In this document: positions 1,162 through 58,571 of the stretch, piece by piece
Position numbering within the stretch: position 1 is the stretch's first letter
How the letters are laid out: each line of letters begins with the position of its first letter
Source: Lepidodermella squamata
Taxonomy: Eukaryota > Animalia > Gastrotricha
NCBI GenBank assembly: GCA_047495785.1
Contig: JBLDXI010000004.1
Coordinates: 1,116,001 to 1,180,000, forward strand
DNA: 64,000 nucleotides
Direction: 5' to 3'
Notes under the pieces: generated by a model
The model's database searches: none
The model's input: only the letters and a program-made list of their open reading frames with translations
Told to the model about the DNA's origin: nothing
Translations under genes and position numbers: made by a program

Positions 1162-1372
1162 TGAAAGCTCATACGCCCAAGAGAGGGCAGCTTGACAATG
1201 TTAAGGAAAACAACATATAATTGCAGGACAAGTTCAGATTATAGGACAGGAAAGGTGTAGTAGGAGAAAACAAAGTTATAGATCAGACACTCGATCAATT
1301 CTGTTCTGATGTAACTGAGCAACAAAATCGCAACAAGAATCGTTAAGTATATCTTGTGTAAAAAATCAATGT

Positions 1373-1525
1373 CAGCATGTTTGCGAAGTTCGGAGTCCAA
1401 GCTGCTTTCAGGCCCGAATGTATACCTAACGGTCCCACTATGGGTCTAAGGGTCCCACCTGCGGTTTTCTTGTGGTTTTCAGGTCTGAACCTCTTGAGGA
1501 CCCTCACTGGCCTTGGCCCCACCTC
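1373..1525. repeat. Dispersed repeat, second copy at ~18633-18785
   Basis: Shared text atgtttgcgaagttcgg...gtccaagctgctttcaggcccgaatgtat...gggtcccacctgcggttttcttgtg...ctcactggccttggcccca. Confidence 0.85.
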
Positions 1526-1887
1526 CCGGACAAAAAAGTTTGAGTAAATTAACATTGTAAATTCCTGTATTTTGGTGTGAATTGCAGTTTATTCTGGTAT
1601 TTTCATGTCAGCAAATCAGGAACCAGCTCAGCGATCCGGAATTCAGCGTTGTAAAACAGGGTTTTTCGTTTTTCGGCCGAGAAACTTCATGTAAATTCGT
1701 GTAAACCCTGAAATTCGGTCATGTAAACTCATGGATCTTCGTCCTTCAGTTATTTCTTCGATGTATTTCAATGGAAGCTGTACGATTTCTCGTCTGAAAC
1801 ATCCTCACATGATTTTACATCCTGAAAACGACGTTGTATTCTCATGTAGGAAGATCGATCGAATAAAAAGTAAATAAATTTTTAAAA

Positions 1888-2600
1888 CTAGCAAAACAGG
1901 CGGGCGCAAGCGCCCGCCAATGTATTTATACTTCCTATTGAAAGCGTAATACTGCCTGAAACCCCTCAATGAATGTTAACGACCGTGTTTCTCATTCTTA
2001 ATATCACTCTTGAGTAAGTAACTTGAAGCATTGCGTTAAATTTCCCTAAGGCTGCGGAATAAGACTCCAGCTATTGAGTATCCCCTTATATCTGGAAGTG
2101 AGCGCGAGCATCTTTCGATGATCAACTCAAGATCAACTCGAAATCAAGAAAAATATGCATACCTTATACTTCCTAATCTCTAATTTATTGACATGGCACA
2201 TGTTCAGAGAATTAGCAATCAATAACGAAATGGAGAGTTCACGTAAGTATCTTCATCCATGTTCATTCATTCAAGTCCATGTTTCTTTTTTCTTTACTTC
2301 CGTCCGTCTCTTGGTTGACGACTTGATAGAACATTTGAGAGATCTTGAGCGGACTTTTTCGAGAAAATAAGCACAGCCGTAGGTGCAATTCCTTGACGAT
2401 TCATTGAGATGACTGAAACATGATGTACAATCTTGCCTCGTAGAATGGATCAATCAATCTGATTTCTTTCATCAGAGTAGTCTACACTACTTGAGATGAA
2501 ATTTCGGTTCTCCGTAGCAAACAGCATTTGATAGACAGTTGCCAGTGTTCCAAGCGAATTGCGCCATTATGGCCATTATGACACGTTGGTTTTAGAGCCA
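1888..2600 (-). mobile_element. Helitron 3' end and decayed body; the other boundary is uncertain
   Basis: On the minus strand a GC hairpin ggcgggcgc-tt-gcgcccgcc (1899-1918) is followed after 7 nt by CTAG then T, the canonical Helitron 3' terminus. A broken OTU-like peptide TGNCLSNAVCYGEPKFHLK* lies at ~2490-2546. Confidence 0.5.
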
Positions 2601-3432
2601 TAGTCATTGCATCTTTAATCACAATCCTGAGAACTGAGTAGAGAAGGTGATGCATTGACTCATGTTATTTCAATGCTATTTACCTCATATCCTCTAAAGT
2701 TTTCAGAAGAACTTCATCGTCACCTTCTTTCTTCCTTTCAGATGTTAAAGGTAAAATGATGCTCTCAACTCTCTAAGATAGATCAAATGTTAAACAACAG
2801 CTCATGCAATCATAGCTTAGTCAACTATTGAAAGATACTACTCTGCGGCTTAGATCATAACAGCAGTTCAAGATTCATTCCGTCTCACATGATAATCAAT
2901 CCAAGAAAGTATCAGACATAAGATCTATGATAGAAAGAACGAAGAACACAACTTTAACGATAGTGACAACGACTGCCCTGGTCAAGGCTTGTAACAGCTC
3001 CTCCTAAGGTTGATGAATCAAGACTCAATGATTTAGGTAGCCAATGCTTACTGGCAACACCGAACCGGAAGCTAAGCATTCTTATACTGATAATAATGAT
3101 AAAGAAGTTCGCAGTGCAAAATGTGCAGAACGCAGAACGCAGACCATGGCCCGCGCGTCCTCGTCGCTTAGGGCGCGCAACCTGAAAACCTGTGATTTGC
3201 TCGCGTTATTTAATTTTCACACGAATTAAATATTTTAATTTTGTCATCGACAATTAATATTTTAATAAAAGAAAAAATATAAATTAATGCGTTTGATAAT
3301 TTTATAAGAGAGAATACTCTGACATTAGGTTTTTAAATTTTGGCGCGAAACCCGGACCCTTACGTTTTTTATGTTGTTGATTCAGTCGATATTCAGTTTC
3401 GCACCCTTTTTCTTGTGCGTAAGCGTCTATCC

Positions 3433-4559: not shown

Positions 4560-7500
4560 ATGGTTTCGTATCACTTTGCTGTGCTGCTAACCCTATTACT
4601 GGCGTCAAGTGAACCGGCTTCCGGTAAAGAATTGAACTGGGTTCGCTGCTTCTCGCAGTTCAGCAACCGATTCACCAACTGCGTACCAGCTGCCAATGGC
4701 TGTAATCCACTCACCGAATACCAGGTTTTCAAGGATTTACTTACATGCCGTAACATGATGATTGTTGAATTTTTCACCAACTAGTGGGGCGGCATTTTTC
4801 GAACAACTGGCGTCTGCAACACTGGGGTTAGTTTTATTCTTCAGTTTTTTCTTTTTAATCAATGCCATGTTTTGTCTAAAGAATGCCCGAATGTGCTACA
4901 AATACGAGGCTCTCACTCCGTTTTGCGTACCTGGTAACATTGGCTGTAACAACCCGGGTGATATGAATGTTTCCCTTTTTCCATTTTTTCAAGTTTTTAA
5001 ATCTTATTTTTCTGTTTTTTTTTACGTCGTTGATCTAATACGATTCTTGTATTTCAGACGTTCTGGTTCAACGATCAGAATGCGACGTTGAGTTTAAAAT
5101 ACAACCTCAACGAATGCGAGAAAAAGAAAGCTGCATTCGACGTAAGATTTCAGGAAACTTGATCATTGCGGCGATATGATGCTTTCAATTTGTATCATTC
5201 AAGAATTTAAAATTCAGGCGCTGTACGTCGAACAACGTCATCAAGACTTGTGTTCCGGATCCGTATTCCTGCCCAAACAACTGGGTGTGCAATTTGCGCC
5301 GTTGTGGATATCGTATTTTTGATTATCGGTTTCGTTTCGCCTACAGGTTACTGAATCAACTGTGTATCTCGGTCTCGTCTTATGCACCGATGGATCAGGT
5401 TTGTGAAATTGATGTATTTTATCCATAGACAACTCCATACAGATCGGAAACTAGCGATCTTCCTATAGTAAATAAATTCACACCAAAACGTGAAAACGTA
5501 GGCACGCGACCTTTATTTTTATTCACCCATCGCTCTATCCACCCATTGTAATTTTTTCGATTTTTAATTAGTTCCTAAAATTACCAGAGGAAATCTTTCA
5601 TTTCCCACAGATTTCAAAAAAATATTCCGGAATACTAGAAGCACTACTCTATCGAATGAGTCCCGTCTCACTAGACGGTTCTTCTTTCTAACTTTTTTAA
5701 ACTTTTCTTGAAGTTGGTCACTTTTACATCGCCATCGCCATTTATCGCCATTTTAAAAGTCTTTCATGACGGTAAACTTCTTTATACAATTTTTTGAAAA
5801 TTTCAGAAAAATCATTTTATCCACGATTAGAATTTTCTCTATCCGGCAATATAAAACTTCTCCAACTTTCCGATTTTTTTCAACTTGGTAAAATTCTCAT
5901 GTAGCTAGTTCTCCTTCAGATAACGAAAAGTGACCAATGGGTCCAAAGTCCATTCCAAAGGTCCAAAAAAAAATTGAATACCAAGTTGAAAAAAATCGGA
6001 AAATCGGTAAATAAAATTATTGGAGAAGTTTTATATTGCCGGATAGAGAAAATTCTAATCGTGGATAAAATGATTTTTCTAAAATTTTCGCACATTTCCC
6101 CACCCGCCGGTGTTTCCTCCGCGCGCGCGCTCCTATTGGCTGGGCCTTGTTGCGCAACAACTAAGATAATTACAGCCTTCGTGCGCGCGCGCACGGATGA
6201 GAGCAAAGACGGCTGCGCCCGCCCCCTCAGATTCGGTGATTTAAAGAAGGAGCTGAGCTCAAAAAGGAGCTGAGCTCTAACGAAGCTGAGCTCCCTGAAT
6301 ACCGCGCGCGGTCAAGTCAAAGGCCAAGTTCATGGAACAATGTCGGTTTTAATACCAAAATATAGATCGTTCAATTCTCTATCGACTGAATATAGGTTTG
6401 TCGCTCGAAAACTAAACAGAAAAAAGTTAAGTTGGTAAATAAATTAATGCCATTTGCGCGCACTCTCAAGCGATATGCACACTTAAATACGCAATCTAGC
6501 ATGGGCGTAAAACCTTTTCTGATTGATTTTTTCCATCGAGAAATCTACATTCGATCGATAGAGAATTGAACGATCTATATTTTGGTAGTAAAACCGACAT
6601 TGTTCCATGAACTTGGCCTTTGACTTGACCGTGCGCGGTATTCAGGGAGCTCAGCTCCGTTAGAGCTCAGCTCCATTGAGCTCAGCTCCTTTTTGAGCTC
6701 AGCTCCTTCTTTAAATCACCAAGTACGGAGCGCTGAGTCAGCGAAATGGTTTCTTGACAACATTTTGGATTATCATGTATTTTGTTCTTATTTGCCTATC
6801 GATTGAATAGAAAATAAAAAATGGGGCGCGCGCTAAATTCAAATTTTACCTAACAAATTGCAAAAGCGCGCACCGATGGCACGAGCTATTTTTTGTGAAT
6901 TTGGGGTAATTTCATCAAAATATAGCTTGAGACTCTAGCCATTTGATTATTTTCGCGCTACATCGAATTGATTGAAAAATGTTGATTGAAAAAAGTTTGT
7001 GCGTTTGAAAAGTTACCGCTCATCACCGGAGCCGATTATAATATGAAGTGGATGTAAAATTCCTTAGAATGATCAAAACTCAAGCGTTTCTAAAAATGTA
7101 GAAAAATTGCGATTTCATAAAAGCGACATAATATCATGATGAACCATGGTTGCGCGATTTTATTTTGCTTGGATAAATTTTTGAGCACCCTGTCGATTGT
7201 AAGGCATCATCATTTCTTGCATATCTTCATGATTTGCAATTTCTTGAAACTTGGTACTAATTGAAAATGTAGGTACTCTCGATGCGTGCGCTTCACATGA
7301 AATACTGGACTTGTTCAATTCGGGCTAGCTGACTTGTGGTTTTCTTGTGATTTTGCAGCGCGCGCGTAGAAAGCTGCAATCATTTGTTGCGCAATAAATG
7401 CGCGCAACGTGCGGTTACGCGTAAATTTAACCAGCCAATAGGAATGCGCGCGCGGAGGAAACACCGGCGGATGGGGAAATGTGCAAAATTTTCAAAAAAT

Positions 7501-42962: not shown

Positions 42963-44619
42963 ATGATGAATCTTGTTCTCTCAATGATTCTATGGCAACT
43001 GATAGCCTCATCGCCATCGTTAGCAGCGAAGTCGCGTTGCTTCTCAGTTTTCAATAGCGAATTTAACGGCTGTAAAAACAATTGCTCACAACAGTTAGAG
43101 TACCAGGTGATCATCGAATATTATTTGGATTCATCTAAACAATTTGGTTTAAATTGTATTTTATTGTAGACTGGGACTCCGTTTTCTTCATCCGAGAACT
43201 GCAAAAACGGGGTGAGTTAAAACTTATCATTAATTTCTTAAATTTGTCACATTTCTGTCGGTGCAGGACGCTATACTTTGCTACAACTACAAGACTTACA
43301 GCGTTAGATGCATTCAAGACCGTTTCAAATGCAACAGAACCAACGAGCGCCAAGTTTGTCTAACCTTTCGCTCTTAATCCGCTCTTATCAATTCCATTCA
43401 GGCGGGAGTTTTCGAAAGACACGCATTATTCGGGGACAACTGGTCGGATTGCAGAAACACGTCAGCGCGCTTCGCTGTTAGTGAAAATCTTACCAAATCT
43501 ATCTCATTTTTTTCGAATTCAGTCACAGCGATTCGAACGCTGCATGAGAGGCGAATCTTTCATAACCTGTTCTCCTGATTCTCTCGCCTGTCCATTCAAT
43601 TTGGTACTTGGGCAATGTCTTAACCTCTGAATCAAAACTGTTCCACTTTCGTAGGATCCAGGCGACGAAGCAACTTCGTTTCGCAATCTCGAAGCATGCT
43701 TGAAGGGTGAAGGTAAATTTTCATAGTTTCCTCGATGAATCTAAGCTATGAATCTGTTGAAAAGTTGACCTTGCGATTCTCGAGGACCAAAAGCCGCACA
43801 TTCGCTGTGTTGACGTAAAGACTCGACATTTCTTGGGTTGCCGTCGGCGGAATACAGCCTGCTCACCAGATGCCGAACTGTACGCGCCTCGGCCTTTTGC
43901 CAACAAGGACTTGTGCCTTAAAGGGGTGAGTCATTAAGCTCTGAATTGACAAAGGTTCCCTCTAACGTTTGTTACATTCCAGACTGCCGTGCTTTGCAAC
44001 ACCACGTCAGGCAAAGTTTGCAGCGCGTTCTGTGAAGAGGATTTGCAAACGGTATTGTTTGGTTTTTTGTGCATGACTCATTTTCATAATGGGGTTTTAC
44101 ATAGGAAATTATTTACTCAGCTTCACAAGACTTCCCCACAAACTATGCTCAATGTGAACAGAGCCGAGTCGCTTCTGGGAACCATACAGTTCGTTTTGCT
44201 TATTGAATTCGTGAAATCCTATTTAAACTTGGCCCAAACAGCTTGTGAAGAATTTTACGGTTGCGGTAACGGATGCTGGGACATTCACTCAAGATGACGC
44301 GAAACGAGCCTGTTCGAACTTCACAAACTCTCGTTTAGCTTTGATCAAAACTGAAGCTCAACGGCAAGCTGTCTACGCCGTGATGACGAACGCATCGATC
44401 ACCACTGCTTACATCGGCTTGTCGAAAACCAAGGACCAGTGGTTGTGGGATGATGGTTCAGCTTATGACAACATGCCACCCTGGGCGCCTGGCTACCCGT
44501 CCGGGGCGAAGATGAACCGATGTGTTGGGCTGGCGAGCATTCTCGATGTAGCTGTTCAGTTGACGGATGGGTCTTGCGATTCGCCTTCAGCTAGCGCTTA
44601 CATTTGTGAGACTCTGTGA
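42963..44619 (+). CDS. Lectin gene 4: signal + 5 four-Cys modules + CTLD, 10 exons, intact
   Basis: MMNLVLSMILWQLIASSPSLAAKSRCFSVFNSEFNGC...; all exons splice in frame; CTLD with AYIGL, WLWDDGS, WAPGYP, RCV, YICE. Confidence 0.85.
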
Positions 44620-45222
44620 TACTGCTCATTTACTCCTCTCTGAAATTGGTAAACTCGTATTTTGCCCATTCGAAGCAGTAAGTGAACTAGTTAGGTCTAC
44701 TTTTTAGAAAATTAGTACTTGGTTCAGTATCCCAAGTTTCGACCTGTTCCGACAAATTTGAACGAGTGCCAGAAAAGCCTGCAGTTGATATAGTAATTTA
44801 TATCAAGGCCCATTTTGAAATTCTAAAAAACGATCGAAACTGTTTCTTTATCCTGTCCGCGATTTAAATCCGCGATTTAAAAAAAACAATTTGATCTAGT
44901 TCTCCCGTTTGCCAATGAGACAAAAAACTATTGTCAAATCGAAAAGTGTTCAGAATTATTTTTTTCGATTGCTTTTTCCAGTTCAGTTTTTAGCTGATCA
45001 AGGACAATAGACAATATATTTGTCTGGTCTGGAAAAGCAAACGACGTCAATCACAGAAAATAAATTTATCCTTTACGAATTATCGGCCTAGGCCTAGTTT
45101 TTTGGTGATTAGCTTCATGATAGAGATCTGATTTCTCCGTAGCTTTTTTCACTAAAACCAGGCTCTAGTGAATATTGAAATTGTTTTCATAAATTTCCCC
45201 TACTTTTAGACATTTTTTGAAA

Positions 45223-46903
45223 ATGTTTTTTCGCATCTGCCTAACGCTTATTGTATTAAACGGCCCGTTGTTCACATATGCGAAATGGTTCCGTTGCTTC
45301 TCAGTTTTTGATAACGAATTCAAGGGCTGCCAGAATAACACTTCTTGCGGGCAATACGCGTACAAGGTTACTCTAGGCATTTATTTTGTTCAACCCAGAC
45401 TATCAACATCTTCTGTTTTTCTAGTCAGACATCACTTTCCCTGAATCGGCCGATTGCGAAAAAGGGGTGGGTTGGAAAACATTTTTCCCGAATTTTCTCA
45501 ATTTCTTCATTGTGAAGAGAGCTCGGCTTTGCTACAACTATGTGGAAGTCAGCTATAGGTGCATTCGGGGCCGATTGCAATGCAACAGAGTCAACGAGAG
45601 CCAGGTTCTGCTTTTCTGAACTCATTTCAATTTACTTCTTTATTTTCAATCGACTCGCAGGCTGGATTTTACGATCGAAATGAAAAATTTAGCGACAATT
45701 GGGCAGAGTGTATGAATGCCGCAGAACGCTTACCCGTGAGTTTTATTTGAAAATAAAATGAATTAAAATTACAATTACCTTTCGTTTTTTCAGTTGCAGC
45801 CATCTGAACGCTGCTTCTCAGGCGGCAATTTCGTTGCATGTTTCCCTTTCTCCCTCGGCTGTCCACTAAATTTGGTGATTTTGCAACGTACGTGTATTTT
45901 TACAGCAATTAATTCGATTATCAATTTTCAAGGAATTTGACTTTGATTCACCTTTATACGACAATCTGGCCTTGTGTTTGAGGGGTGTAGGTAAGGTTCA
46001 GGCTTTGCTGTGATAATCAGAAAATAAGAAATTGATTTTTTCAGCGCCTCCCTCTGTTATCGATGACCAGAAGCCGCACGTTCGATGCATGAACCGCAAC
46101 ACTGAAGCTTTTGTAGCTTGCCGGCGCAAAAATACAGGCTGCTCACCGGATGTTCAGATGTTCGCGCTACAACCTTTTGCCAACAAAAACATGTGCCTGA
46201 ACGGGGTGAGTACGACCCATTCCAATAGTTTAAACATTAAATTGCAACATTGCTGAGATTATACTTTGATTTTCTCGCTTTTCAGGATGCTGTGTTGTGC
46301 AACACTCCCACCGGCGTTAAATGCCGTCCCTTCTGCCTGAGAGAAACGCAACTAGTTTAGTTTCAAATCGCTGTTTTTCGACTTATTCATGCCACGTCCC
46401 CGATAGGTAACCGTTTATTCAAAATCGAAAGACTTCGCGACTAATTATGCACAATGTTTCCGAAGCCGACCCAATGTGAGCGAATTTGTTTCCTTCCCGT
46501 CCTCTAAATAAAATCATTTTTATAGCCTGGGACAATTTACACTGTTATGCTTGGGAATGCTGAAATTTTCACGCAAGATGACGCGAAACGAGCCTGTTCA
46601 AACTTCACAAACTCTCGGTTAGCTTTAATCAAAACAGAAGCTCAACGGCAAGCTGTCTACGCCGCAATGACGAACGCCTCGATCACCACTGCTTACATCG
46701 GCTTGTCGAAGACCAAGGACCAGTGGCTGTGGGGTGACAGTTCAGCGTATGACAACATGCCACCCTGGGCGCCTGGCTACCCGTCCGAGGCGAAGATGAA
46801 CCGATGTGTTGGCCTGGCGAGTATCAGCGATGCAGCTGTTCAGTTGACTGATGGGTCTTGCGTTTTGCCTTCAGCAAATGCTTACATTTGTGAGACTCTG
46901 TGA
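45223..46903 (+). CDS. Lectin gene 5: signal + 5 modules + CTLD, 10 exons, intact
   Basis: MFFRICLTLIVLNGPLFTYAKWFRCFSVFDNEFKGC...; same exon and phase pattern as gene 4. Confidence 0.85.
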
Positions 46904-47115
46904 TGCGCTCCAATAGTACCATCAGGAACTGATTGACCGCAATTTCCTCCTCTGCTTATCTTTGACTGAAACCTGGAACTTCTATTCTCAAGCACTATTA
47001 CAACTGAAGAAGTTGAGCTAGATGATCTTGAAATATGTACCTGCGAGCATTTTCCGCCAATGCAATATCTTTTTCCCGCTCGTATATTTTTCATGTTCAT
47101 CATGTTTTAGGCTCA

Positions 47116-48927
47116 ATGAATCTTTTTATTCGCATTTGCCTGTTGCTCCTTGTCGCAGAGGCTCAGGTTTCGCGTTGCTTCTCCGTTTTTAATAACAAAT
47201 TTATCGGCTGTTCCAAGGACTGCGACCAGCACGAGTATCAGGTTAACGCCATCACTAATTGTTTCAACCTTAAATCAACACAATTTTCTAATTTTTAGTC
47301 CGACCTTTTGTACAGATCTCCCATAGATTGCCTTCAAGGGGTGCGTTTCAAATTAGTTTCATATGTTAGAAGGGTATCCGTGCCCCCGGAGACGGCCACC
47401 TCCCACGCCGCATACGGGCACAATTCCTTTCCTTCGGGTCCGCCTGCTGCTGCTGCCGCCAATTATTTCATATGTTTTCTTTTGGTTTGAAGTACGCTCG
47501 ACTATGTTACAACCATGCGGACTACAGCTATACGTGCATTCGGGGCCGATTGAACTGCAAGAAAACCAACAACGAGATCCAGGTTTGTTTTGAATTCAAT
47601 AAAATGCGACAAGCCTTCCTGACTTTGTTTTTCTCGTCATTTTCCCGATCGAATCTGCAGGCCGGAATCTTCGATTCGAAAGTTGCTAATGACGCTACTG
47701 TTTTCAGGCTGAATTGGGCTGACTGTCTTAATGCCAGAAAAATTGCGCCGGTAAGTTCATAATGATAAACCGTCCCAATCGTGTGCCTGAACCTTTCAAG
47801 CTCAGCCAAGAGTCATTTTCCGTCATCTCCATTAGAAATCAGAATCGAGATTACTCAATCCAAATCGTATCTTTCAATTTCAGTTGCAGCCTTTCAAGCG
47901 CTGCTTTTCGGGCGGCAATTTCGTTTCCTGTTATCCTACTTCTCTCGGCTGTCCGAAAAATTTGGTAATTTGACTGCGCTGAAAGTTTCCGCCATGACTG
48001 CTTTTCTTTCTATTTTTCCTAATTTCTAGGATGCTAACAACGAGCTACCTATCTACATCAATTTGGAATCTTGCTTGACCGGTGTAGGTGAACTTTTTTC
48101 TCATTTAACCTTTTTCTCTAATTTCTTTTTGTTTCGGCATGCTACTGTTTTGAAAAACGTCGATCTCTTAACCAGAGATGGTCCGGTTCCAAATAACCGC
48201 CGGTTCTAACCGGGTTGAACCCGGTTCTTCCGAACCGAAACCGCCCGGTTCCATTTTTTTCCAGCATCAAAAACCGCCGGTTCGCGTTTTGGCTATACAC
48301 AGCTGAACCAGCTAAAATTAGAGTTTTCCACCGTAGATATCCCAAGTTTTCACTGTATGTGTTGCACCTGCATGATTCAGTCGATTATCGGTTATTAATT
48401 ATGAATGATCGATCCCATCTCAAATAGTGGCACCCGCGGTTAACCGCCGGTTAAACCGAAAAAACCAGGTCACACCTCAAAAAGTCCGGAACCAAACCGA
48501 ACCGAACCGAACCGGACAGATAAAAATGGAACCGGAATATCTCTACTCTTAACACTAGCACTTTTAATTTTTCAACAGTTCCACAATCTGTAATCGATAG
48601 CCTAAAGCCGCATGTCCGCTGCAAGGATAGGAAGAATGGCGATTTTGTAGGTTGCCGCCTCAGGAGTGCAGGCTGCTCACCAGATGCAAAGATCTACGCA
48701 CCGCAGCCTTTTGTCAACAAGAAAATGTGTCCGAAAGGGGTGAGTGCTTTTAACGTGTAACAATAGATTTGTGTTGTTTGATTTCTTGATTTTTTATAAT
48801 GCTGTACTATGCAAAACCCCATCCGCCGAAACTTGCAATGCTTATTGTCGGAGCGAATTATTCATAGTTTGATTACAGGAAAATATTTAAAGCTTTCTCA
48901 CGCCGAGTTTTTCCTAGGCATCGGTCT
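47116..48927 (+). pseudogene. Lectin gene 6: 3'-truncated, no CTLD; close paralog of gene 8
   Basis: Exons 1-7 intact; the exon 8 acceptor lacks AG (ttttat|aat versus ttcag|aat in gene 8); exon 9 breaks after gcatcggtct into the upstream region of the next gene. Confidence 0.8.
48173..48545. mobile_element. hAT-type MITE with GAACC/GGTTC subterminal repeats
   Basis: TIR cagagatggtccggttcc / ggaaccggaatatctcta; 8-bp TSD ctcttaac; empty site in the paralogous gene 8 intron at ~55373. Confidence 0.95.
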
Positions 48928-49027: not shown

Positions 49028-50451
49028 AAGAAATTGCTTATTTACATCAGCCCATGGCTCCTTGTCGCCGACGCTGAGGGTGACCAATCTGAGCTATTGT
49101 GGCATTGCTTCTCGATTTTCGACAACAATCACAGCGATTTTCATGACGGAAAAACTTGATCGTGTAAAAAAACATGAACCTTAATTCAGTCCGTAAAGTG
49201 GTATGCTGGAATGATCAACTGCATTATTTGGGTGAGTGCGAACTTATCATTTTTGCATATTGTTGCGAGTTTCTCTACTTTGTAGTACGCTCGACTTTGC
49301 TAGTACAACTGTGTGGAATGTTGAATTCAGCTTCAGGTGCACTCCCCACACAATGCTGGGCAACGAAACCGAAGAAAGCGTCTTGGTTTTCTCAACTTTC
49401 CTCAGCATCATATCGACTCTCAGGCTGCATCTTTCGATCTTCGATGAATTCAACCGATTTTCGAGCAATTAGGCAGAATCCTTGCACGCCGCACAATTCT
49501 TGCCGGTGAGTTGCGAGTATTATACCCATGTTCGTATAAAGACCCCGACGAAAGGGCGTTTCAACTTAAAGGCTCATTGGGAGTATTTCACAGCCTACTT
49601 AAAACTTAAAATCTTTTATTTCGTCCCCGTTAGTAACGCACATAGTTGGATTGAAATGGCCTTTGTTCGTCCTTTTCATTAAAGATCAACCATAGGTAAA
49701 GGTGTATGAAATTTAGCATTATCAGTTTATTTCTTGTTTATAAATAAGGTTTATAAATAAACTGACACCATATATTCACCAAAAAACCAGTGCTCCGAGT
49801 ACGGGGGGAAGGGGGGTAAACAAACCCCCTTGGCGTTCGAAAATTTCTGAAAAACGTAAGGGTCCCCCCTGTTTTGCTAATTTTGGGCTCAAAATGGCTC
49901 TATTTACACCCTCAGAGCTGGACCTAGTCGGATCACTGCAAAAAACTGGTTATCAAATAGGCAAAGGTTTATTTAAATTCTAAATCGGAAGACTTCGCAA
50001 AGAACTACGCTCGACGTCAACAAAGCCTACCCACTGTGAGCGAATTTGTATCTTTCCTTGCATCCTTTTACATTTCGTTTCTTTAGCCTGGACCAACCTA
50101 AACTGTTATGCGAGGGAAATCTGAATTATTCCCGCGAGTTGAGGCAAGATTCCAACAAGACAAAGCCGTGATCGAAACCGAAGCTGAGCGACAAGCTGCC
50201 TACGCCGCGATGACAAGCGCTCGATCACCACCGCTTACATCGGCTTGTCGGAAACTAACGACCAGTGGTTGTGGGGTGACGGTACGAGGTACGGCCTACA
50301 ACAACATGCCTCCCTGGGCGCCTGGCTACCCGTCCGAGGCTAAGATGAACCGATGTGTTGGCCTGGCGAGCATTCTCGATGCAGCTGTTCAGTTGACGGA
50401 TGGATCTTGCGATTCGCCTTCCGCCAGCGCTTATATCTGTGAGACATGTGA
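49028..50451 (+). pseudogene. Lectin gene 7 pseudogene
   Basis: ATG replaced by AAG, stop codons in exons 1 and 3, middle exons missing, frameshifted CTLD exon. Confidence 0.85.
49788..49938. mobile_element. hAT-type MITE; inverted copy at ~58761-58911, fragment at ~22843-22875
   Basis: TIR cagtgctccgagta / tagtcggatcactg; 8-bp TSD caaaaaac. Confidence 0.9.
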
Positions 50452-50894
50452 TGCGCTCAATTGTTTTTGTCAGCAATTGAGGTTTTTACCTCAATTTCAT
50501 CTTCTTTCTCTATTCTCTATGCAACTTCTTTCCTCAAAACCAATCACAGCCTAATCGATTTAAGTGAATTCAGCTCAGGCATTATGCTTCCGGATTGCAG
50601 GATCAAAGGTCAGCCTCAGAAAAAAATAGCAGCTGCGACGCGGCCATGCTTTTGATTTTTTTGCCAGACCGTGATTTCTTCGCTCCGTCATTTCGTCATT
50701 TCGTCGTTCCGTGATATTTATCCTGCGAGGATTTAATACCATTCAGAAATAGTAAGAAATAATAAAATAATCAAGCCATCGAAACACCATCGATGCACTG
50801 CGGTTGCAAAAAGTCACCAAATTACTCCATAATCATATAATAGCATATGATATATTTCATCATTTTACAAATAATCAGATTATGCTCTTTACAA

Positions 50895-53016
50895 ATGCCA
50901 TTTACTTATACTGAACCAGTAGACAAAGAAGAGTTGGCCAAAACGATCAGTCGATCTCGCCCTAAATCAGATTCGGTCGCCGAGCTGAAACCGCGAAGTG
51001 TAATAGCGAGAGCCGAAAAAGGGCAACTCATTCATCTCCAGCAGATGCCAGAGTCATACCTGGGTGCTGTGATGAATGGCGCTGTTGTCACTAAGGCTAC
51101 TTTGAAAATGGATTATCAAGGGATCGGAAGTGTTGAAGTTTCCTGGCCGCGCAAAGCAGAACCTTCGCCGGAGTCTAAAGCTCTCGAGTAAAATTATTTA
51201 GCTTAAATTTCCAATGCGATAAAAAATACTGCATGTGCTTTATCATCGAAGATTGATCAGAAAAGGCCTGCGGCATAATCTGGGTGCTCGGCAAACCTAT
51301 AGCATGCGGGTAGACTTAGGTTTACCTGATGTCAAGCGAGAGGTTTTTTACGAAATTCGAAAAAGGATTGGAAACATTCTACCAATTCACTCGGTTGAAG
51401 GTGATGTTTTTAGCGCTCGTAAAAACGCCAGAAAAATAATATTTTGAAAATATATTAAAAACGAAATTTTAAAATAGTATTTATAAAAATATTTAATTAT
51501 TTGTGAAATTTCATTAATTTAAAATTTAAATATTTAAATATATTTTAGATTTAAATACTTAAATAATATTTTATTATTTTATTTATATATTTGAAATATA
51601 TTTGAAATATTTGAATTCTAGATGACGGCGCCTGGAGGTCGCTATCGGATCTAGCTAATGCATGGATTCGAGACAAGATTATGTCATCTTCCTCCGTCAA
51701 TGACATTCGTCTTCAGATAGATGGCTCTGCCAACCGTACTAATCAAATACCTGGCAACGTTATCGCGAACCTTTGTAGTGTTGCAACTAAAAAAACTATC
51801 GGTTTGAGCGGCGAGCATATAATGGCGGCTTTTCGCGGGAAAGAAACCAGCGAAAATCTGGAAACATACATGGCTCCTTTCTTCAAAGATTTGTGTTCAA
51901 CCATTAATAACGGAATAATTGTTGAAAATGCTATGTATTCATTCCGCCTCATCGCAATATGTGACTACGCGCTTATGACGAAGCTCTTCGCCTGCGGTCA
52001 CCCCAACACCGACTACAGGTGCGTTGATTGCGAGTTTTTCGAATCATCTGTTACGAAGCCACCTCTTCGAACTTCGAGACACGCTTCTTCAACGCAAACT
52101 GCACATCTCTATCAAACTCGACTACGGCGGCAAAACAGCTTTTCGTCGAAAAAACGGTTATTCAAGAAAAGAAAATTTAATCTGTTTAAAAATCAGTGGA
52201 AAGGAACGAAAGGCTGGTCGAAAACCTTCTCGCCATTGATAAGACTGTCAAGAAGAAAATTAGTAATAATTCCAGACGTTTTTCATATGCAAGTTAATGT
52301 ACCTAAGCTTCTCTTTCGTGCCGTAATTTTAACCCACTAAATTAATGATTTTTGCAACTGTTTGATTTCAGGTTTTCCGATTTTACCACTTGGCAAATTT
52401 GAAATGCAGCGCTTTGAAATTAGCCGTTTTTCTGGAGAGCGCCGATCTGCGGAAACGAAAACGAATACAGGTGGTTTTTGACAAGTGGTGTTCCTCAGTC
52501 ACTCCTGCCATAAAAAATTCGAATCACTACGGCTTGGCTAAGGCAATTTATTGAAAAATTTACTTCTCGGCATTAGTTACCACATTGCTTTAGGTCTTCA
52601 AACAGTTTGCTGGGAATCTCGCGAAAACATCTTTGAAAACTGGCTTTTTCATTCCGGAAGAAATAGCTTTAACCCCTGCTTCCGAGCACCGCCTCACCTT
52701 GCTGAAAAAACTGATCCTAATGTCGCAGGTCGTATTCGATGACGTCAGAGCACGGTCAAAGGATAAAACAGTCAAAATAATGATCAACAAATACCCTGAG
52801 ATGTGGAAAGAAGCTGTAGGAAAGGTGACTTCATACGCACATATGCTCAGCGATCATGTTTACGAGCACCTGGACGAATTCGACCTACATGCTTTATCTG
52901 CTGAGAACGCTGAGCTGGAATTGAAGAAAGTATTGAAATTCGCTTTGAAATCGTCAACGAATGCAAGACCTTTGGAGAATGAAAACCGCCTTTTTTATGC
53001 GAAAATGGCTGATTAA
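50895..53016 (+). CDS. RAG1-core/Transib-like DDE transposase, 5 exons, ~560-580 aa, apparently intact
   Basis: Exons ~50895-51188, 51252-51400, 51622-52322, 52372-52470 (or 52542 with a GC donor), 52594-53016. Motifs RLQIDGS, AICDYAL...YRCVDC, PDVFH and TSYAHMLSDHVYE...ALSAENAEL are colinear with RAG1 SCDG, GYDEK...CTLC, DALH and YFHKTLAH...WASEGNES. Confidence 0.75.
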
Positions 53017-53138
53017 TTTGATTATACGGTTGAATGTTTTACAAAATTTGAGCAAGACATTACACCTTTATTTGGCTTCGACATCGGAGTGCTTCAATTA
53101 CTTCTATTTGATCACAAATTTGAAAATAAAAATTGAGT

Positions 53139-53702
53139 TCAAGCATCTTTCTCGATCACTCGCCATTTGCTCGGATTAAGGCTGGTGTCCCAGACCATTT
53201 CGTAGTCATCCTTAGAAAAGTCGAATTTGAAGAAGCCTTTCTTTATGTCAGCGTCCAGCTCAGCTATCTTTCGCAAAATCGGGGTTTGTTTTTTGCCCAC
53301 CATTCGCTCGAACGCCCCGTTTGCGTCTTCGGGATTTTCCACCATCCACGCGTCCCACGCAGACTTGGGAGCGGTGGATGATTTGCCGATTAGTGCAAAC
53401 GCTGCATGCATATGTCGCAATCGATTTTCCATTTCAAAGGACCATTTCGAGTAACCCCCTGAATAAAAAAATCATTATCGTTGACTGCTTTAAAAATTAA
53501 AAAAATGAGTACCTCGATAGCTATTGACTGCGAGTAAAACGTTTCGCAGTTTCACTCGGCGTTCGGCTGGGAGTTGCGGAGAAATGACCGTTTGCGACAA
53601 CTCAGTCATGAGTTGCTCGTCGGTCATCGCGGCAGCCGCCCCGGCATCAACTTTACGCTTCTTACCGGGGTGACTGGGACCGGGTGCGCTATTCGAAGCC
53701 AT
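53139..53702 (-). CDS. Transposon partner protein of unknown function, ~169 aa, 2 exons
   Basis: Exons 53702-53513 and 53458-53139 (54-nt GT-AG phase-1 intron) join in frame: MASNSAPGPSHPGKKRKVD...NSYR/GGYSKWSFEMENRLRHMH...WRVIEKDA; NLS-like KKRKV. Confidence 0.75.
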
Positions 53703-53957
53703 GGATAGGAACAGAAAAATCGGAAAAATCAAAATAATATTTTTGCCGGAAACGAAGAAACCACGAAGTGACGAAGCGACGAAAAATATGCACGCAGAGA
53801 TATACAAAAAACGCAATAACAATTTTTTTCGGGAGTTGACCTTTGATCCTGCAATACGGAAGCATAATGCCAAATTATCTCCCTGTAAACATTTGTCGCT
53901 ATATTTATCCGGCTGGTTTGTTTTTCATTTTCGATTTTCGTTATAATTTAGGCTGAT

Positions 53958-56233
53958 ATGAATCTGTTTATTCGCATCTGCCTGTGGCTACTTGTCGCAG
54001 ACGCTCAAATAATTATCGCAGAGTTGAACAGGTGGCGTTGCTTCTCAGTTTTTGATAACAAATTCACCGGTTGTGAAGTCAAATGCGACCAACACGAGTA
54101 TCAGGTTAACAACATGAATATTTATTGTTTCAACTCTAAATTAACGACATTTTCCAATTTTTAGTCCGACATTTCGTTCAATACTCTTCCATCTTGCCGT
54201 GACGGGGTGTGTTTGAAATTACTTTATCTATAGCGGCGGAAGAGTGTTTTACGGACGGAACGTGTATGTGTGACTAGCGCTCAGTCTGTTGCCCCCTGGT
54301 ATGAAAAAATGATGGGAGAAACCTACTTTGCTTACTGCATGGGCAGCGTCGAGAGTAGGATTTTTTCATGTAAGATTGATAAGAGGGTCCACCATTTCAA
54401 GGTCTAAGATAAAAACCGCTCGAAGACACTCACCTTACTCCACATTGTAGCGGGCAAAAATGTGGGGCTGGTTTCGATTTTCGACTCAATTTTAGCTTAA
54501 TTCGGCTTGGAGACTGCGAGCAAACCGTACTTAAGCGATTCTCCTGATATTTGGACCAGGAATAGTCTAGAATTTGTCATTTCTTGGCAGAAAGCCCCTT
54601 ATACCAGTATCAAACCCGGTCATCTTACAGCCCCGGCCAACCGCCCCGCCTTATTAGGACGCGGCACACTGCTGCCAATTCTTAGATTTGTTTGTATTTG
54701 CTTTGAAAGGCCGCTCGACTATGCTACAACCATGCGGATTACAGCTATACGTGCATTCGGGGCCCATTGAAATGCAACAAAACCAGCAACGAGATCGAGG
54801 TTCGTGCTGAAAGTCCAGACAATGCGTCCTGCCTTCCTCAGTTTTTTTATTTCATTTTTCCGATCGATTTTGCAGGCTGGACTCTTCAATGAACCAGCTG
54901 ATTTCAGGATCAATTGGGCAGACTGTCTCAATGCCACAAAAATTGCGCCTGTAAGTTTGAAATAATATATCGAGTCGATCGTGCGCCTCAACATTCTTTA
55001 GCCCAGCCAGCGAGTCATTTTTTTCGTTGGTTCCATTAAAAAAATAAAACTTGACATTAATGAAATCAGAATGGAGATTACTCAATCGAAATCGTGCCTT
55101 TTAAATTCAGTTGCAGCCATTTAAACGATGCTTTTCTGGCGGCAATTTTGTTTCCTGTTATCCTACGTCTCTCGGCTGTCCGAGAAATTTGGTAAGTTGA
55201 CGGTGCTGAAAGTTCCGTCACCACTGCTATTCTTTCTATTTTCTAGGATGTCAACAATGAACTACCCACCTACAACAATTTGCAATCTTGCTTGACCGGT
55301 GCAGGTGAGCATTTAACCTTTTTCTCTAATTTCTTTTTGTTTCGGCATGCTACTGTTTTGAAAAACGTCGACCTCTTAACACTAGCACTTTTAATGTTTC
55401 AACAGTTCCACAATCTGTAATTGATGGACTAAAGCCGCATGTCCGCTGCAAGGATAGGAAGAATGGCGATTTTGTAGGTTGCCGCCTCAAAAGCGCAGGC
55501 TGCAGCCCAGATGCAAAGATCTACGCACCGCAGCCGTTTGTCGACAAGAAAATGTGTCTGAAAGGGGTAAGTGCGCAGTAATTTTTCAGCAGCTTCTTAT
55601 TTTATTATTTCTTTCAGAATGCTGTGCTATGCAAAAGCCCATCCAGCGAAACTTGCAATGCCTTTTGCAGGAGACAAATATTTATAGTTTGGTTTCAAGT
55701 AATTATTTACCCTTTTTCACGCGAGTTTTCCACAGGCATCGGTCTATTCGAGGTCAGCAGACTTCGCGACTAACTATGCGCAATGTAAACGTAACCAAAC
55801 CACGGTGAGTGAATTTGCTACACCTCTTTTTATCAAATTCAATTCACTTAATCAGCCTGGGAAGAGCTACACTGCTGTGCGTGCAAATGCTGAACTATTC
55901 ACGCCAGGCGACGCAAGATCGGCTTGTTCGGAAAACACGAACTCGCGACTGGCTGTGATCGAAACCGAAGCAGACCGACAAGCTGTCTACGCCGCAATGA
56001 CGAACGCCTCGATCACCATCGCTTACATCGGCTTGTCGAAAACTAACGACCTGTGGCTGTTGGATGATGGTTCAGCTTATGACAACATGCCACCCTGGGC
56101 GCCGGGCTACCCGTCAGAGGTTAAGATGAACCGATGTGTTGGACTGGCGAGTATCAGTGATGCAGCTGTTCAGTTGACGGATGGATCTTGCGATTCGCCT
56201 TCAGCTAGCGCTTACATTTGTGAGACGCTGTGA
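53958..56233 (+). CDS. Lectin gene 8: signal + 5 modules + CTLD, 10 exons, intact
   Basis: MNLFIRICLWLLVADAQIIIAELNRWRCFSVFDNKFTGC...; all exons in frame; ~450-bp insertion in intron 2. Confidence 0.85.
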
Positions 56234-56329
56234 TAAACTGTATTTTTCTGCCAATTTCTCTATCTTAATTATTCGCATAATTCTCTAAATATCGCATATG
56301 ACCGAAAGTAAGGGTAAAATGTCGTTGGC

Positions 56330-56662: not shown

Positions 56663-58571
56663 GCTGCATTCTTGCATTCTTCATTCTTCGATGAATTGGA
56701 CTCATTTTCGGGCTATTGGGCGGAGTGCTTGCACGCCGGACAATTCTTGCGTGTTAGTTGCGAGTGTTATACCCATGTTCCTAATACAATATTCTGAATA
56801 TTTCGCAGCCGTAAAAAATTGCGGAGCCTCATTCGAATCTGTTTAACGCTTAATTGTAATTTAAATTTGGAATTTTTTTATTTTAAGGCGCAAACAATTA
56901 CGATTTTTAGCCCGTCCTCCCTAAGCATGAGGATCCCTCATGGTTAGGTAAAATATTCAATGTACATGAATTCTAATAATACATAAAATGTGTCGCATAT
57001 AGACGGCGGGTTGAAATTGGTGAAGTTAAGGCTAATTCTCGATATTTCTCATAAGTATCGGAATTCAATGAAATAAGGGCATCCACTGCTTGGATCTGTA
57101 ATCCTTAACAAAAATCGGCGAAAACCATGGGACAAATCCTCCATCTTTTCTGAGTCTGAGTAAAAATGATTAAGCAACAGGCGCATTGATAATTGCGCAG
57201 TAGCTCGTGTCTCGTGTGCAACTTTCAGGGGGGGATGGGGGGATCACCAGCTCGGGAATCTAAGATCGCACCCTGCTCGTGTGAATGCAGCGAGAAATAG
57301 CACAATTAATACTGGGGTAGAAGATAAAATAATCATCTCATCATCTAAATAAGGAACCGTTAACCTTGCTGCTTAGTAGTATGTAGTCTGAATCCTTGTC
57401 CGGAAACCTGTGTGGGTCCCATCTACCTAGCCGCAGCCTTTTACCAACAAGGAAATGTGCCTGAAAGGGGTGAGTTGTGAGTTCTCCCAGCAGTTATAGC
57501 GAATTCCCTCTGTTTTTGTTCGAAGAATGCTGAGCTCTGTCACGAACCATCTGGCGCAATTTGTCGGGTCTTCTGTAATAGGAAATTAGAAAGAGTTTGC
57601 TTCAAAATAAGTCATTCTTCCACTTTAATGCCGTTTCTTAACAGCCATTCGTCTGCTCCAAGTCGGCAGACTTTGCGGCCAATTTTGAGAATTGCCAACG
57701 TAGCAAATACACGGTGAGCGATTTGATTCTTCTGAATCTGAATACCGATACTGAAACAGAACCGAAATAAATGGTCTCGTACAAATGGTAAGGAGCCTCA
57801 GAGTCAACCATACAGGCAATAATGGGGCTATTGAGTTGAGCTAGGAGCTGGGAGAATATCTACACAGCTTACTCAATTTGGCTCAGATTTTAAATACTGA
57901 ATTCAGACCACTCCTACTGTTGATTTGTTGTTCGCATGGCCAAAGTGAAAAATCTGAGAAAAAAACAATAGGGGGACCCTTCGGTGATGAAATTGGTGGT
58001 TGGAATTCCACGACCCTACTACGCACATGGATGACGCAAAACTTCTAAACATAGCGCATGAATCACGGGGAGACATAGAATTTCTATTTTCCACCTAATC
58101 AGTTGATTGCCTACGAATTCAACTTACTAATTTGTATTCTGATATGCCGGCTGATTTTAATAAATAAATATTGTCTTGGTTATTTATGTACAGGGTGCGA
58201 AAGATTTTACTGTTGTGGCAACGGATGCTGAAACATTGACGCAAGACGACGCAAGGAGGGCGTGTTCGAACAAGACAAACTCTCGCTTAGCTGTGATCGA
58301 AACCGAAGCTCAACGACAAGCTGTTTACGCCGCAATGTTAGACGCCTCGGTCACCACCGCTTACATCGGCTTGTCGAAAACTAAAGACCAGTGGTTGTGG
58401 GATGACGGTTCAGCCTATGCTGACATGCCACCCTGGGCGCCTGGCTACCTATCCTAGGCGAAGATGAACCGATGTGTTGGGCTGGCGAGTATCAGCGATG
58501 CAGCTGTGAATTTGCCCTTAGGGTCTTGCGTTTCGCCTTCAGCCGACGCTTACATTTGTGAGACTCGGTGA
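56663..58571 (+). pseudogene. Lectin gene 9 pseudogene, paralog of gene 7
   Basis: Exons 1-3 deleted; remnants of exons 4, 7, 8 and 9; the CTLD exon has GAG to TAG at 58455-58457. Confidence 0.85.

Follow-up and report, generated by a model that had tools for sequence, protein, structure and literature searches.

A Probable CMCT-Clade Transposon with a Conserved Convergent Partner Gene in the Gastrotrich Lepidodermella squamata

Organization of the Element

The 64,000-nucleotide stretch of the Lepidodermella squamata genome analyzed here (GenBank assembly GCA_047495785.1, contig JBLDXI010000004.1, positions 1,116,001 to 1,180,000 of the forward strand; hereafter the window, with positions counted from its first nucleotide) contains a transposon of ~3.3 kb, in which a transposase gene and a small partner gene converge inside terminal inverted repeats (TIRs). 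A preliminary description of this DNA had noted an intact-looking two-gene TIR transposon, and this observation is confirmed by both the TIRs and the gene models, the components of which are as follows (pI, isoelectric point):

50578-53871: transposon, ~3.3 kb, with two convergent genes inside TIRs
50578-50627, plus strand: left TIR (beginning GGCATTATGC), 50 nt
50668-50712, plus strand: subterminal repeats of the left end, YTTCGTCR-like with a period of 8 bp (Tandem Repeats Finder core 50686-50705, unit CGTCATTT, 2.5 copies)
50895-53016, plus strand: transposase gene, 5 exons, 551 aa, pI 9.8
50895-51187, plus strand: transposase exon 1
51261-51400, plus strand: transposase exon 2
51622-52322, plus strand: transposase exon 3, RNase H-like core with D178, D259, C278xxC281 and D363xxH366; the part that was modeled
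52372-52470, plus strand: transposase exon 4
52594-53016, plus strand: transposase exon 5, with H494xxxxH499 and E515xxE518 (SAENAE), both kept in the metagenomic relative L009
53017-53138: tail-to-tail spacer, 122 bp, with AATAAA at 53125 (plus strand) and 53067 (minus strand)
53139-53702, minus strand: partner gene, 2 exons (53702-53513 and 53458-53139), 169 aa
53747-53791, minus strand: right subterminal block of like 8-bp repeats in mirror orientation (Tandem Repeats Finder core 53763-53783, unit ACGAAGCG, 2.6 copies)
53822-53871, minus strand: right TIR; mismatches to the left arm number 1 within the outermost 35 nt and 5 over all 50 nt

The TIR arms (50 nt each, 90% complementary and 3194 nt apart) form the single outstanding inverted pair in our repeat search, and they enclose both genes exactly. 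The single mismatch in the outer 35 nt, as first described, holds up on re-examination, and a match of such quality was obtained 0 times in 100 shuffles. The tip of the element reads GGCATTATG, such that the outermost paired bases are GGC/GCC, with CA..TG following at positions 3-4 and a heptamer-like CATTATG occupying positions 3-9 of the left TIR. Allowing 2 mismatches in 15 nt, we found no further copy or solo end of the element in the 64-kb window. Recent activity of the element is plausible.

The subterminal repeat blocks lie ~90-130 bp from the tips at both ends and mirror each other, with the hexamer TTCGTC occurring twice in each block, compared to 35 occurrences on both strands across the whole 64 kb. 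Arrays of short subterminal repeats are the classical accessory-protein binding sites of En/Spm, and by analogy, the 8-bp repeats are candidate binding sites for either the partner or the N-terminus of the transposase.

Gene Models of the Transposase and Its Partner

Joining the transposase exons at canonical GT..AG sites, after reading the three forward frames, gives a spliced sequence of 1656 nt, corresponding to 551 aa plus a stop codon, with no internal stop and with GT..AG at all borders. The introns measure 73, 221, 49 and 123 nt, several of their acceptors are of the TTTCAG type, and the predicted intron structure looks nematode-like. One relative is found on L009, a 7.1-kb metagenome contig that carries a full transposase homolog (~31% identity) plus a convergent partner homolog, and that aligns in tblastn with residues 9-89, 100-379 and 379-523 of our model at 30-34% identity, thus backing all five exons by homology. 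Because this homology spans the five exons while the introns of the L009 homolog lie at other positions, we take all five to be coding, and the originally proposed five-exon splicing without stops is borne out, as a prediction, by the GT..AG joins and the L009 homology together.

Several details of this model deserve comment. The sequence just before 50895 (50847-50894) offers a further in-frame ATG, 16 codons earlier, that would lengthen the N-terminus of the transposase; in the shorter model, the L009 homology does not set in until residue 9, and the true start could be either ATG. This copy has ~30 extra residues between CxxC and DxxH, forming a low-complexity loop of low predicted local distance difference test (pLDDT) score. 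We considered and rejected an extra intron in this loop, as the relatives align across this region in a single frame, including the C-terminal part of the loop, and the alternative splice breaks the frame. Within intron 2, the stretch 51447-51616 is extremely AT-rich and packed with short overlapping palindromes.

The second gene was correctly described as tail-to-tail with the transposase gene, with 122 bp between the two stop codons. The N-terminal exon of the partner is basic (pI ~10) and contains PGKKRKVD (KKRK), resembling a nuclear-localization signal, and the structural model (pLDDT 48.8) predicts four helices followed by a beta-hairpin, such that the C-terminal domain would be helical and close with the hairpin. 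The partner has no Pfam match; word-indexed protein searches with both the partner and a partner profile returned no relative, and an ESM Atlas feature search gave only meaningless gag-like neighbors, all below 0.9. At 169 aa, with a helical prediction and no Pfam match, it is not kelch/RAG2-like, in keeping with the preliminary description. A Myb/SANT-like assignment was also rejected, with only two tryptophans conserved and no model match.

Homologs of the partner are nevertheless carried by two metagenome contigs, L009 and L010, at ~32-34% identity over ~90 residues, with the blocks TAPKS, GKxxTxI, IKxGxxxFDFSxDxY and WD kept. On these contigs, the partner homolog directly follows the transposase homolog, with which it is again convergent. 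Because a relative of ~31% identity keeps the convergent pair, we regard the partner as an integral, co-evolving component of the family: as judged from these sequences, the gene pair has stayed together over ~70% protein divergence, and the partner is neither a neighboring host gene nor a recent capture. The suggestion that the lineage had acquired a different cofactor is unsupported in that form: it implies a RAG2-bearing ancestor, which nothing here favors, and the partner is old in the lineage.

Relatives of the Transposase

None of the transposase exon pieces matched a Pfam model at E<=1, including the RAG1, CACTA, Mirage and Chapaev models, and the relatives of the transposase likewise gave nothing above noise in Pfam; faint sub-threshold signals were seen in one relative only (DUF1280 at E 0.037 and Transposase_21 at E 0.17), none of them for RAG1. 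Profile searches of PDB sequences with the exon 3 and exon 5 alignments returned no RAG1 or Transib at E<=10. An exhaustive HMMER search with exon 3 against 1.84 billion cluster representatives yielded seven true relatives at 27-42% identity, all of which are fragments of short open reading frames (ORFs) that trace to a few ENA/Logan metagenome assemblies, and none of which is annotated at full length. No relative was added by a word-indexed search of a 5.8-billion protein collection with the exon 3 profile, and scans of metagenome contigs with the transposase and partner profiles, as well as a scan of viral contigs, returned no loci. With no Pfam recognition and near absence from the protein databases, the view of this element as belonging to a possibly unclassified lineage is supported as far as Pfam is concerned.

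In the family alignment, the fragments keep RLQIDG, CxDY, CGHxxxxxRCxxC and PDxFHMxxN, to which L009 adds TSYAHxLxxH and LSAENxE. Both L009 and L010 end within the partner gene, with no longer contig on record. The relatives (L001-L012) come from few assemblies (ENA ERZ27332993, ERZ23486764, ERZ23486787, ERZ27333047 and ERZ28573522), and distinct subfamilies (P0001, P0004/P0005 and P0007) share the same metagenome samples, which suggests one unsequenced eukaryote with a diversified set of these elements. Upstream on L009, a 644-aa ORF (1233-3167, minus strand) has no Pfam match; just before the transposase homolog (4590-4650) lies a run of CCGGCACA-type short repeats with CGTCAT-containing motifs, which may be the subterminal repeats of the related element itself.

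Motifs and Fold of the Transposase

The spliced protein contains D178 (QIDG), D259 (ICDY), C278xxC281, D363xxH366, H494xxxxH499 and E515xxE518, exactly in the order first reported, with the catalytic and zinc-ligand residues all intact. D259 and C278 are separated by 18 residues, that is, a D-to-C distance of 19. RAG1 has D708 and the zinc ligands C727/C730/H937/H942, and the spacings of C278/C281 and H494/H499 equal those of these zinc-binding residues. The first cysteine stands at residue 196 or later, leaving the N-terminal 195 aa cysteine-free, and the protein therefore has no Chapa zinc finger or RING domain.

The AlphaFold (AF2) model of exon 3 has a mean pLDDT of 67, with residues 1-124 mostly well predicted. 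Its strands and helices succeed one another as in an RNase H core, strand 1 ending at D178 and strand 4 being closely followed by D259. In a Foldseek search of the PDB, the best 22 matches to this model were all HzTransib, RAG1 or BbRAGL, and VIA-align gave Z-scores of 9.3 for RAG1 (170 residues aligned, RAG1 553-807), 7.8 for HzTransib and 6.9 for BbRAGL, compared to 5.5 or less for unrelated chains (4.8 for P-element transposase). At the fold level, the assignment of a RAG1-like transposase is thus correct for the modeled core, which is predicted to adopt a RAG1/Transib-type RNase H fold. We know of no solved structure of CMC type (CACTA, Mirage, Chapaev), however, the structures known to us from this broad group being those of RAG1, BbRAGL and HzTransib, and because of this, PDB matching can return only RAG1/Transib. 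Among predicted structures in the ESM Atlas, the exon 3 model is matched at TM-scores of 0.54-0.61 by DUF1280, Transposase_21+DUF4218, Transposase_21/DUF1258 and RAG1 clusters, with the longest alignments being those to CACTA-type entries. The language-model neighbors of exon 3 are the same four family sets (DUF1280, Transposase_21+DUF4218, DUF1258 and RAG1), all at 0.94-0.96, and those of exon 5 are DUF4218 and RAG1_ZnH2. Of these families, DUF1258 corresponds to Mirage, DUF1280 to Chapaev and Transposase_21 to CACTA (Majorek et al., PMC3985635).

Another point of the preliminary description that lacks support as worded is the parallel that it draws from the D/D/CxxC/HxxxxH/E pattern to RAG1/Transib, to which the pattern is not specific. 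Published work unites CACTA/EnSpm, Mirage, Chapaev and Transib/RAG1 in the CMCT clade and ascribes the C(2)C/H(3-4)H signature to all of it (PMC12730594), and predicted CACTA, Chapaev and Mirage models match our exon 3 model equally well.

Target Site and Flanking DNA

As had been stated from the outset, the GGC ends show no visible target site duplication (TSD). The flanks read tca|GGC...GCC|aaa (5-nt flanks gctca vs aaatt; 2-nt flanks ca vs aa), and we found no direct repeat of 2-5 bp at the flanks of this single copy. Three readings of the insertion fit the single copy: (i) the element begins at GGC, and a duplication was never made or was lost; (ii) the tips are ATTATG, and a 2-bp GC duplication arose in a palindromic GGCC target; or (iii) the tips are CATTATG, inserted bluntly into GG|CC.

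The intergenic spacer that holds the element belongs to a tandem array, the gene units of which are paralogs with piecewise identities of 72-86%:

44342-44631: piece of the tandem array
46417-47652: piece of the tandem array
49977-54871: piece of the tandem array
55746-56234: piece of the tandem array
58289-58564: piece of the tandem array

The paralogous unit at 46.4-47.4 kb is without the 3.3-kb insert, and its junction (46.9-47.1 kb) is only ~72% identical, with indels, which makes it too diverged for reading a TSD; if anything, this diverged empty site leaves no room for GGCC in the ancestral target. To the left of the element, a 148-aa ORF ends at 50554, 24 bp before the element start, and to the right, an ORF with a signal-peptide-like start begins at 53958, ~87 bp beyond the element end. 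The two flanking ORF pieces that were tested had no Pfam match.

Probable Assignment to the CMCT Clade

Taking these observations together, we consider that the locus probably holds an autonomous-looking, cut-and-paste transposon of the CMCT clade, from a lineage that is recognized by no Pfam model of the four groups. The CMCT signature (D178, D259, C278xxC281, H494xxxxH499 and E515) is present and conserved across the relatives. The assignment is to the clade as a whole rather than to one group within it. We note that several points weigh against this assignment. Most CMCT elements have 5'-CA..TG-3' termini and TSDs of 2-5 bp (PMC12730594), unlike this one, with its outermost GGC and no visible TSD. 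One copy was examined, such that mobility and the exact termini are putative, and expression is likewise putative, the introns and their splicing being predicted from sequence and homology; among public sequencing runs, the stretch was found in a DNA-type data set only. The folded part of the transposase is exon 3, and motif spacing is what predicts the zinc site and places E515. The model of the partner is of low quality, and the function of this protein is putative. Finally, the description as a distinct lineage derives from failed hidden Markov model matches and is accordingly provisional.

It is unlikely, but the strongest of the competing explanations, that we are instead looking at a divergent member of a family from nematodes or other animals that has been described before (Mirage, Chapaev/Chapaev3 or animal EnSpm), is present in Repbase/Dfam and lies too far from the Pfam seeds to be recognized. 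The DUF1280 (Chapaev) and DUF1258 (Mirage) clusters among the nearest language-model and fold neighbors fit such a member, subterminal repeats with a second gene are classical CACTA traits, and Chapaev and Mirage are known in Caenorhabditis (PMC4411706, PMC3985635). The 233-aa piece with both aspartates and CxxC, however, has no DUF1258, DUF1280 or Transposase_21 match in Pfam (E<=1), the cysteine-free N-terminus has neither a Chapa zinc finger nor a RING domain, the ends do not read CAC and the flanks show no TSD of 3 bp (TWA) or of 4 bp, and the exhaustive HMMER search brought up no annotated full-length relative. Even less probable is membership in the Transib/RAG1 branch proper, as a RAG1-related transposon in which another convergent gene has replaced the RAG2-like cofactor. 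This would account for RAG1 and HzTransib being the best solved-structure matches, for the D-to-C distance of 19 and the CxxC and HxxxxH spacings equal to those of RAG1, and for the tail-to-tail layout, which is as in ProtoRAG; SAENAE resembles the RAG1 segment around E962, and CATTATG is one base off the ProtoRAG heptamer, CACTATG. Against this, the PDB can return only RAG1/Transib, and predicted CACTA-, Chapaev- and Mirage-type models match equally or slightly better. There is also no match to Pfam RAG1_RNase_H, ZnC2 or ZnH2, nor to RAG1/Transib in the PDB by profile, and the faint Pfam signals in a relative are for DUF1280 and Transposase_21 only; the ends do not begin with CAC, a 5-bp TSD is missing, and the partner is kept in a distant relative with no sign of its having replaced a RAG2-like gene.

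We regard it as very improbable that the locus is an immobile relic or domesticated pair, with leftover inverted repeats and a host neighbor as the second gene. The lack of a visible TSD and the single copy in the window would fit a relic, but both genes lie exactly inside near-perfect TIRs, no catalytic or zinc-ligand residue has been lost, an unrelated metagenome contig also has this gene pair, in convergent orientation and 31-34% identical, and the tandem paralog of the flanking region is without the 3.3-kb insert.

Proposed Mechanism and Significance

For the CMCT transposon that we favor, analogy with RAG1/Transib suggests DDE-catalyzed nicking at each inverted end, after which the element would be released, probably by the route that RAG and Transib take, with hairpins forming on the flanking DNA, and its 3'-OH ends would be joined into a new target. 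The partner could act as a nuclear accessory protein in a role similar to that of TnpA in En/Spm, either recognizing the ends, perhaps through their mirrored 8-bp subterminal repeats, or helping in complex assembly. Each gene would presumably be transcribed inward from its own end, with both transcripts terminating in the 122-bp spacer. A bolder proposal, which we put forward as possible but rather doubtful, is that the element, together with its few metagenome relatives, represents an undescribed lineage of superfamily level within the CMCT clade. Its hallmarks would be an N-terminal DNA-binding region without cysteines, a small accessory protein that is obligatory, convergently encoded and of a new fold family, and atypical insertion (with no TSD, or with a 2-bp GC duplication in a palindromic GGCC target).

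Our preferred description of the element is a rare branch, seemingly undescribed, of the known CMCT kind, to which a small and conserved helper gene of its own belongs. What it adds is an orphan partner that a distant relative keeps together with the transposase, subterminal repeats in mirror orientation, and ends departing from the usual CA..TG/TSD rule. It also illustrates that the protein family databases cover animal CMCT diversity thinly. RAG1 arose from this broad transposase group, and a member as compact as this one, seemingly intact and made up of an enzyme of 551 aa and a helper of 169 aa, would be a tractable system in which to address how accessory proteins are coupled to RAG1-fold transposases, whether the tail-to-tail layout of ProtoRAG is a recurrent solution rather than a unique ancestral state, and how members of the CMCT clade differ in recognizing their ends and choosing their targets. 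By itself, the element leaves the account of the origin of RAG unchanged.

Comparison with Known Systems

The likeness to the CMC supergroup lies in the Transposase_21+DUF4218, DUF1280 and DUF1258 predicted structures, which match equally or better than those of RAG1, in the subterminal short repeats and second gene, as in En/Spm, and in the multi-intron animal gene structure. It differs in that Pfam scores for none of these three groups, the tip is GGC rather than CAC(TA), no 2-4 bp TSD is visible and no Chapa zinc finger is present, and the partner is similar to nothing detectable except its ortholog in L009. TSDs are of 4 bp in Chapaev and 2 bp in Mirage. The 2-bp flanks here (ca vs aa) do not fit Mirage, for which we also found no DUF1258 match, with DUF1258 clusters appearing as fold and feature neighbors only. 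Chapaev carries an N-terminal Chapa zinc-finger domain (PMC4411706), and Chapaev3 has CAC termini and a TWA 3-bp TSD (PMC3014272); in our element, no cysteine precedes residue 196, neither the ends nor the flanks fit, and DUF1280 appears below threshold in a relative only. CACTA/EnSpm elements are characterized by Transposase_21 and DUF4218 domains, CACTA termini, a 3-bp TSD and subterminal repeats. Here the picture is mixed: subterminal repeats are present and the fold neighbors carry Transposase_21/DUF4218, while no Pfam match rises above noise (E 0.17 in a relative) and neither a CACTA tip nor a 3-bp TSD is seen. PIF/Harbinger, the members of which are two-gene elements with a Myb/SANT partner, DDE_Tnp_4 and a 3-bp TWA TSD, was considered and rejected: there are no such Pfam matches, the predicted fold is of the RAG1/Transib type, and the partner has only two conserved tryptophans.

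Compared to Transib, RAG1 and ProtoRAG, the element has its best solved-structure matches in HzTransib (6pqn), mouse RAG1 and BbRAGL (6b40), with Z-scores of 6.9-9.3, D-x18-CxxC and HxxxxH spacings identical to RAG1, a tail-to-tail two-gene layout as in ProtoRAG, and a heptamer-like CATTATG near the tip. It differs in the lack of any sequence match (including Pfam RAG1_RNase_H, ZnC2 and ZnH2), of a 5-bp TSD, of a heptamer start with CAC at the tip and of RING or Chapa N-terminal domains, and in a partner that is a 169-aa, predicted helical protein rather than a kelch/PHD RAG2-like one. In the classification of Kapitonov and Koonin, Chapaev falls within the Transib superfamily (PMC4411706). The TnpA-TnpD system of En/Spm offers a functional parallel, in that a catalytic transposase is combined with a small accessory protein and short inverted subterminal arrays lie at both ends; in En/Spm, however, the two proteins come from alternative splicing of one transcript, whereas here there are two separate convergent genes, and binding of the repeats is putative. 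CMCT offshoots of superfamily level are still being named, including ESTA, Plavaka and Lanisha (PMC12730594) and CNEST (PMC12810828). These are precedents for lineages that escape Repbase and Pfam yet keep the DDE/C(2)C/H(3-4)H signature; they come from fungi or plants, carry other cargo and have TSDs that are defined, as TA or 3 bp, whereas this one lies in an animal genome, with nematode-like introns and an orphan partner.

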